From positions 2,105,643 through 2,169,642 of the forward strand of contig CAJFCJ010000014.1 of the NCBI GenBank assembly GCA_904063045.1: a stretch of DNA of 64,000 bases. Direction: 5' to 3'. The position numbers and the translations under genes were made by a program. This document shows, piece by piece, positions 5,979 to 6,425 of the stretch. The notes below the pieces were generated by a model that was not told where the DNA came from, made no database searches, and worked only from the letters and a program-made list of their open reading frames with translations. Position 1 is the first letter of the stretch; every line of letters starts with the position of its first letter. This DNA is from Dimorphilus gyrociliatus (lineage: Eukaryota > Animalia > Annelida).

Positions 5979-6425
5979 ATGTCTGGTCGTGGTAAAGGTG
6001 GAAAAGCTAAGGCTAAGGCCAAATCTAGGTCATCCCGTGCCGGATTACAGTTCCCCGTTGGTAGAATCCACAGAATGCTCAGAAAGGGAAACTACGGTAA
6101 GATTTCGCAATACGATTCTTGCAAATCGAGATAATTTAATGACTGATTTTTCTTTCTACAAACAGCTGAAAGAGTTGGTGCTGGTGCTCCAGTTTACTTG
6201 GCTGCCGTTATGGAGTATTTGGCTGCTGAAGTTCTTGAATTGGCAGGAAACGCTGCTAGAGATAACAAGAAATCTCGTATCATTCCCCGTCATTTGCAAT
6301 TGGCCATCAGGAACGACGAAGAATTGAACAAATTATTGGCTGGTGTAACAATCGCTCAAGGTGGTGTGTTGCCCAATATCCAAGCTGTTCTTTTGCCCAA
6401 GAAGAGCGCAACTGCCTCATCCTAA
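5979..6425 (+). CDS. H2A: Histone H2A, canonical sequence, with one 69-nt phase-1 intron (6097-6165)
   Basis: Exon 5979-6096 gives [39 protein letters not shown]. The intron is GTAAGA...CTACAAACAG. Exon 6166-6425 gives [19 protein letters not shown]...[12 protein letters not shown]. No C-terminal SQ motif, so not H2A.X; sequence is not H2A.Z. Confidence 0.97.

Follow-up and report, generated by a model that had tools for sequence, protein, structure and literature searches.

A histone H2A gene of Dimorphilus gyrociliatus with both a short intron and a histone stem-loop

The H2A gene and its divergent H2B partner

We analysed a stretch of 64,000 nucleotides from the genome of the annelid Dimorphilus gyrociliatus (assembly GCA_904063045.1, contig CAJFCJ010000014.1, positions 2,105,643 to 2,169,642 of the forward strand), referred to below as the window. 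It contains an H2A gene on the plus strand, starting at ATG 5979, and an H2B gene on the minus strand, the two lying head-to-head at a distance of ~2 kb. The features of this region are listed below, in window coordinates.

3559-3574, minus strand: H2B histone stem-loop, a perfect 16 nt, followed by ACCA and by CAAAG at the family spacing
3616-3999, minus strand: H2B coding sequence, one uninterrupted ORF of 127 aa (h2bc1, DgyrT17418)
4078-4206, minus strand: H2B promoter with TATA, octamer ATTTGCAT, two CCAAT boxes and E2F-type TTTCCCGC
5790-5903, plus strand: H2A promoter with E2F-type, CCAAT, octamer-like and TATA elements
5792-5796 and 5857-5861, minus strand: inverted CCAAT boxes of the H2A promoter
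5808-5815, plus strand: octamer-like ATGCAAAT
5831-5842, plus strand: overlapping E2F-type sites TTTCGCGC / TTTGGCGC
5896-5903, plus strand: TATAAAAT of the H2A promoter
5979-6096, plus strand: H2A exon 1, codons 1-39 (ending KGNY) plus base 1 of the Ala40 codon
6097-6165, plus strand: intron of 69 nt, GT-AG, phase 1, in the Ala40 codon (GTAAGA...ACAG)
6143-6147, plus strand: candidate branch site CTGAT, with the A 19 nt before the intron end
6147-6157, plus strand: T-rich tract of the intron, 11 nt
6166-6425, plus strand: H2A exon 2, from bases 2-3 of the Ala40 codon to the stop codon (6423-6425), tail KKSATASS
6457-6502, plus strand: histone 3' processing signal (Rfam RF00032, 39.1 bits; gathering score 34)
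6462-6477, plus strand: H2A histone stem-loop, 16 nt, beginning 36 nt past the stop codon
6478-6481, plus strand: ACCA, the expected cleavage site
6490-6494, plus strand: CAAAG core of the candidate downstream element
6751-6756, plus strand: AATAAA, 273 nt past the stem-loop; the aligned bases of the orthologue read AACAAA
6791-7198, plus strand: next gene, with a conserved 5' region (6791-6961) and a first coding exon from ATG 6962 to ~7198

The H2A locus is h2auv1, entered as DgyrT17417, "H2A_histone_unknown_variant_1", in Table S6 of Martin-Zamora et al. 2025 Genome Biol (PMC12153100). The transcript given there has the 69 nt removed. That census marks the gene as no pseudogene and describes its expression pattern as distinct. 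The NCBI annotation at the same place reports a 125-aa product across 447 nt, a span that includes the intron. While the gene model is already published, the combination of intron and stem-loop has not previously been pointed out; stem-loops go unmentioned in PMC12153100.

The encoded protein is identical at 119 of 125 residues to that of an intronless H2A gene of the same genome, h2ac2, with the differences confined to one core residue and the final residues of the tail. Pfam Histone and Histone_H2A_C domains were found in exon 2. No variant motif is present in the protein, including the SQ(E/D) motif of H2A.X; D. gyrociliatus has a separate h2ax gene, which ends in SQEY (Table S6, PMC12153100). 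By its sequence the protein is canonical, carrying no variant signature. The spliced product was not listed in a protein search focused on the tail or in the h2ac2 cluster (4745 members), and the h2ac2 and H2B proteins have database records on genome contigs only.

The junction of the intron reads G/GTAAGA...ACAG/CT GAA, and the 5' site, branch candidate, pyrimidine tract and 3' site of a U2-type GT-AG intron are all in place. Its length is typical of this genome, where the published median intron is 66 bp and splicing is adapted to short introns. The initial annotation had located a 69-nt GT-AG intron in the Ala40 codon, and this intron, like every other sequence element it named, was found exactly where it had been placed. 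It had also held that removal of the intron is required to restore the H2A frame. As a multiple of three, the 69 nt do not shift the frame; what stands is that the unspliced reading adds foreign codons and ends at an in-frame TAA at 6132-6134 (ORF 5973-6134). With this intron, h2auv1 departs from the intronless pattern of metazoan replication-dependent histone genes. No second copy of the intron was found in the window, in a second histone-bearing contig of D. gyrociliatus (L002) or in an orthologous contig (L010), and an introner or repeat origin was rejected on these grounds.

The promoter of h2auv1 had been proposed to be of the S-phase type, which holds at the level of motifs (E2F-type, CCAAT and TATA), with conservation of the E2F-type sites. 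These sites lie within a 33-nt block that is invariant between D. gyrociliatus and L010, and the block is flanked by the TATA box, the two inverted CCAAT boxes and the octamer-like ATGCAAAT. E2F-type matches are scarce, numbering only five in the 64-kb window, three of them in the two histone promoters. The elements of the H2B promoter (TATA, octamer, two CCAAT and TTTCCCGC) are all kept in L010. Furthermore, the H2B partner is indeed intronless, as had been claimed, being a single ORF with its own stem-loop.

No H3 or H4 gene is present in the 64-kb window; a complete quartet lies on another scaffold. PMC12153100 places the quartets on scaffolds 2 and 29, yet the H2A/H2B pair described here is on CAJFCJ010000014.1. 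The window H2B is called "clustered histone 1" in Table S6 of that study, while the H2A 2 kb away is called "unknown variant 1".

The 3' flank of h2auv1 bears out the stem-loop and histone downstream element of the initial annotation. Two histone stem-loops occur in the 64 kb where none is expected (none was found in shuffled sequences), one after the H2A gene and one after the H2B gene. We compared seven stem-loop histone genes, namely the H2A and H2B of the window, the four genes of a quartet on scaffold 29 (L002) and the orthologous H2A in L010. The stem-loops outside h2auv1 lie as follows.

Window: 3559-3574 (minus strand)
L002: 9053-9068 (minus strand), 10419-10434, 12095-12110 and 13187-13202
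L010: 2745-2760

In all seven, CAAAG occupies bases 13-17 after the stem, a fixed spacing of the kind that a U7-binding downstream element should show.

The AATAAA at 6751-6756 is probably a chance match and not a part of the gene. The window has a G+C content of 29% and an AATAAA density of 2.2 per kb on the plus strand, so that the odds of finding one within 273 nt are about even. An AATAAA follows the stem-loop at 62-152 nt in the six remaining stem-loop histone genes, closer than in h2auv1; that of the orthologous H2A is at +101 nt, a non-homologous position. Among the five further D. gyrociliatus genes, such proximity would arise by chance with a probability of roughly 0.003, at ~2.5 AATAAA per kb. 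An AATAAA past the stem-loop may serve these histone genes generally as a back-up, without a tie to the intron. The alternative offered in the initial annotation, a switch to a polyadenylated product, finds no specific support in these sequences, since the motif, although present, is not conserved and six other genes have a closer one. Some polyadenylated h2auv1 product may still be made, as AATAAA motifs lie downstream in both species.

Orthologue, paralogues and nearby intron sites

An orthologue with an intron at the same site and in the same phase, which is new here, was recovered when the ORF that reads through from h2auv1 exon 1 in the genomic sequence was used to query a protein database. 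One match (P0121) contains the same 39 residues and then continues into a divergent read-through sequence. Its contigs, L010 and L011, were independently assembled in two SRA runs and called in a third (the runs being SRR23372228, SRR23372229 and SRR31984834). They derive from a related organism and have the same H2B (minus)/H2A (plus) arrangement as the window. In L010 the intron spans 2397-2454 and is 58 nt long, interrupting the same codon in the same phase (TAT G/GTAATT...CTTAG/CT GAA). The orthologue also rules out an assembly artefact as the source of the intron. Among the matches listed, only Dimorphilus and this relative have an intron at the Ala40 site.

The two genes have diverged very unevenly along their length. 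Identical alignment columns make up 88% of the exons and 39% of the intron, which also contains indels; the two introns share only an initial GTAA, the branch motif ACT(G/A)ATT and a terminal YAG. The 3' flank past the downstream element has 44% identical columns, and L010 retains an intact stem-loop, ACCA and CAAAG. Exon 1 differs by 13 synonymous and no amino-acid changes, and exon 2 by 25 synonymous codon changes and a single amino-acid change (overall dS 0.63, dN/dS 0.04). Both exons are under purifying selection. An unspliced intron would leave exon 2 untranslated and decaying; exon 2 is undecayed, so the intron is old and very probably spliced. This comparison provides strong indirect evidence for splicing, and for h2auv1 having functioned with two exons from a time before the lineages separated. 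The C-terminal tail, SATAS(S/N), differs from that of h2ac2 and is conserved between the species; it could have a distinct role, which counts against a canonical-type gene.

Within D. gyrociliatus, reported to have the lowest known histone copy number, the H2B protein matches exactly two contigs, both in GCA_904063045.1. The second is L002 (scaffold 29), which carries a compact H2A-H2B-H4-H3 quartet in which all four genes have a stem-loop. Its H2A gene, h2ac2, reads TAC GCT GAA without interruption at the site of the intron. At the DNA level, h2auv1 and h2ac2 differ synonymously in 42 codons (dS ~0.9), and the two H2B genes differ by 55 synonymous codon changes while encoding identical proteins. 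Both pairs are old duplicates maintained by selection. The intron is present in one gene only, being absent from the other five stem-loop histone genes of D. gyrociliatus that were read.

Because h2ac2 is uninterrupted and clustered histone genes are reported to be intronless in the annelids Owenia fusiformis and D. gyrociliatus, a gain in the D. gyrociliatus lineage is the simplest history suggested by the sequences. The natural intron gain proposed in the initial annotation is in this respect upheld, although the orthologue (dS ~0.6) indicates that it is neither recent nor private. D. gyrociliatus has on balance lost introns, and a retained gain in a histone gene therefore goes against the trend of its genome.

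Introns near the Ala40 site are common in H2A-family genes of other eukaryotes, as seen in ORF fragments and in metagenome and SRA contigs. Those in the Gly37 codon (phase 1) are found mostly in H2A.X-type genes with SQEY tails and reach ~1.65 kb; one canonical-tailed gene has such an intron as well. Other nearby sites are phase 2 in Arg35 and phase 1 in Gly46. On a Tara Oceans contig with the Arg35 phase 2 intron, the H2A gene has two short introns and the H2B gene one. Contigs with nearby H2A introns include the following.

L005: 207-500
L006: 2096-2443
L008: 2501-2830
L012: 2154-2558
L013: 3001-5183
L016: 1041-1409

A further candidate for an Ala40 intron (P0025, contig L003) was rejected. 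In L003 1-1140, the 3' half of an H2A gene starts exactly at Ala40 and is joined to a local repeat, a sequence present twice in the contig, and its stem-loop is degenerate. L003 appears to hold a histone copy that has been truncated or rearranged.

Alternative explanations

We regard it as probable, at roughly 0.7, that h2auv1 is a working canonical-type stem-loop H2A gene with a spliced intron. According to this reading, the gene would be transcribed from its E2F/CCAAT/TATA promoter, presumably in S phase. The 69-nt U2-type intron in codon 40 would be removed from the pre-mRNA, as is also assumed in the published transcript, and the transcript would be cut after ACCA through the stem-loop/U7 pathway, like those of the other core histone genes of D. 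gyrociliatus. The intron would have arisen after the duplication that separated h2auv1 from h2ac2, before the split from the related organism (dS ~0.6), and would have been kept since. Tiny introns recognised by intron definition may spare stem-loop processing, unlike the introns inserted into mammalian histone genes, which are reported to disturb it. Counted against the canonical reading are the class assigned in the published census (unknown variant, distinct in its expression), and the location of h2auv1 outside the H3-H4-H2B-H2A quartets.

These same two points would be accounted for if h2auv1 were a core-like but replication-independent H2A, comparable to HIS-35, or a dual-mode gene comparable to mammalian H2AX, with a spliced mRNA that is mostly or partly polyadenylated past the stem-loop. 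Such a gene would provide H2A beyond S phase or in certain tissues. A conserved, variant-specific intron together with a private tail is reminiscent of the conserved private intron of HIS-35, an AATAAA lies downstream in both species (+273 nt here, +101 nt in L010), and some human replication-dependent histone genes are described as yielding polyadenylated and sometimes spliced transcripts (PMC3661734). However, the stem-loop, ACCA and CAAAG have been kept exactly while the 3' flank drifted to 44% identity. The AATAAA motifs of the two species are not at homologous positions, and the six other stem-loop histone genes have nearer ones. The E2F-type promoter and the stem-loop H2B partner are both conserved, and the tail is not of the SQ(E/D) type of H2A.X. 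We consider a replication-independent or dual-mode role rather unlikely.

Two further explanations concern the intron itself. If the 69 nt were an unremoved insertion in a dead or dying copy, the product would be only a 51-residue stub, in line with the read-through ORF stopping at 6132-6134. This is hardly credible, as exon 2 has not decayed: it shows 25 synonymous codon changes against one amino-acid change relative to the orthologue, and differs from h2ac2 only in the tail and one core residue. The splice signals have moreover been kept in both species while the interior of the intron was scrambled, and the census, drawing on expression data, flags h2auv1 as not a pseudogene. Alternatively, the intron might be old, namely the recurrent phase-1 Gly37 intron of H2A.X-type genes, inherited and then slid by 9 nt to Ala40. 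The two sites share their phase and lie only three codons apart, introns in the Gly37 codon occur in several eukaryote contigs (L005-L009 and L013-L014), and annelid h2ax genes are multi-exonic according to published work. Against such a history, which we judge highly unlikely, the h2auv1 protein is far nearer to canonical h2ac2 than to the h2ax of its own genome, GNY lies plainly within exon 1 in both species, and intron sliding is regarded in the literature as very rare. Furthermore, no stem-loop was found in the H2A.X-type loci that could be read to their 3' end.

Comparison with known systems and neighbouring sequence

Introns inserted into histone genes are said, after work by Pandey et al. 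in 1990, to disturb the formation of 3' ends. That animal replication-dependent histone genes are without introns is repeated in textbooks and in recent reviews, and the initial annotation had accordingly described those of metazoans as essentially intronless. This generalisation has a published exception in the bdelloid rotifers. In Adineta vaga and Philodina roseola, nearly all histone genes, canonical ones included, have introns of 52-76 bp (PMC2642717). These genes keep stem-loops and downstream elements, some of the H2A genes have putative poly(A) signals, and the contrast with other animals was remarked upon by Van Doninck et al. 2009 (PMC2642717). h2auv1 is hence not unprecedented, as the bdelloids show that short introns and stem-loops can coexist in animal histone genes.

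The likeness between the two cases extends to the 16-nt stem-loop, the downstream element, introns of a size typical of compact genomes, and the downstream AATAAA or poly(A) signals; in the bdelloids, too, an H2B gene without an intron adjoins an H2A gene. They differ in that nearly every histone class of the bdelloids is intron-bearing, whereas in D. gyrociliatus one gene only is, and in that the bdelloid H2A proteins are unusual long-tailed variants, whereas h2auv1 is canonical in type. The D. gyrociliatus case adds an intron site that is conserved between two species.

Other systems resemble h2auv1 in part. HIS-35 of C. elegans is likewise an H2A nearly identical to the S-phase protein, with a private intron position conserved across species (PMC11139335). 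It has been proposed to matter through its expression, which is not restricted to S phase, and not through the encoded protein (Singh et al. 2024, PMC11139335). That paper makes no mention of a stem-loop, while h2auv1 keeps a stem-loop, a downstream element, an E2F-type promoter and a stem-loop H2B neighbour. Mammalian H2AX, a known gene with both an S-phase stem-loop mRNA and a longer polyadenylated one, underlies the idea of a poly(A) switch; h2auv1 differs from it in having no SQ(E/D) tail and in that its AATAAA is not conserved. Polyadenylated and sometimes spliced transcripts of human replication-dependent histone genes are also on record (Kari et al. 2013, PMC3661734; Lyons et al. 2016, cited in PMC9526256). 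These are alternative products of an uninterrupted coding sequence, whereas the coding sequence of h2auv1 is split, such that every productive mRNA needs splicing. Oikopleura was considered as a precedent and rejected, since its clustered stem-loop histone genes are intronless in the published description. A survey of mollusc histones is silent on introns and stem-loops.

h2auv1 represents a second, independent animal lineage in which a canonical-type H2A gene combines an intron with a stem-loop and a downstream element, all of them conserved. With two such lineages, the intronless rule reads as a tendency and not as something that the mechanism demands, at least for tiny introns. The findings also suggest that the census label "unknown variant" conceals what appears to be one of a very small number of S-phase-type H2A genes in this worm. 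In practical terms the gain is modest and lies in a tractable natural case for the coexistence of splicing and U7-dependent cleavage. A bolder reading, which we put forward as doubtful, joins these points: h2auv1 of dinophilids, as one of maybe two stem-loop H2A genes, would need both splicing and U7/SLBP cleavage, and the intron would have been kept over dS ~0.6 for a function. Were this true, the exon-junction complex left by splicing might aid export or translation, or retention of the intron might act as a brake that balances H2A against H2B, and the gene would offer a natural system for asking why the S-phase histone genes of animals otherwise shed introns.

Downstream of h2auv1, conservation resumes at the next gene, where ~170 nt before ATG 6962, together with the first exon, match the related locus at 81-93% identity, before collapsing at the GT of the exon (~7199). 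The segment 6791-6961 is probably a long conserved 5' UTR or promoter belonging to a transporter-like gene. The possibility of a small RNA, for instance U7, at 6791-6900 was considered and rejected, as the sequence has no Rfam match and is continuous with the first exon of the next gene. With conservation resuming at ~6791, only ~310 poorly conserved nt are left for a read-through transcript of H2A.

Sampled words of the interval 3300-7300 were also found in sequencing runs. A coral metatranscriptome run contained 14% of them, equivalent to about one histone mRNA length, which suggests the presence of D. gyrociliatus RNA in the coral sample. A further run, of a type not stated, contained 56%. 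Finally, the window holds two tRNA genes on the plus strand, at 33460-33531 and 33914-33985, which score 64.5 bits each (Rfam) and lie 454 nt apart.
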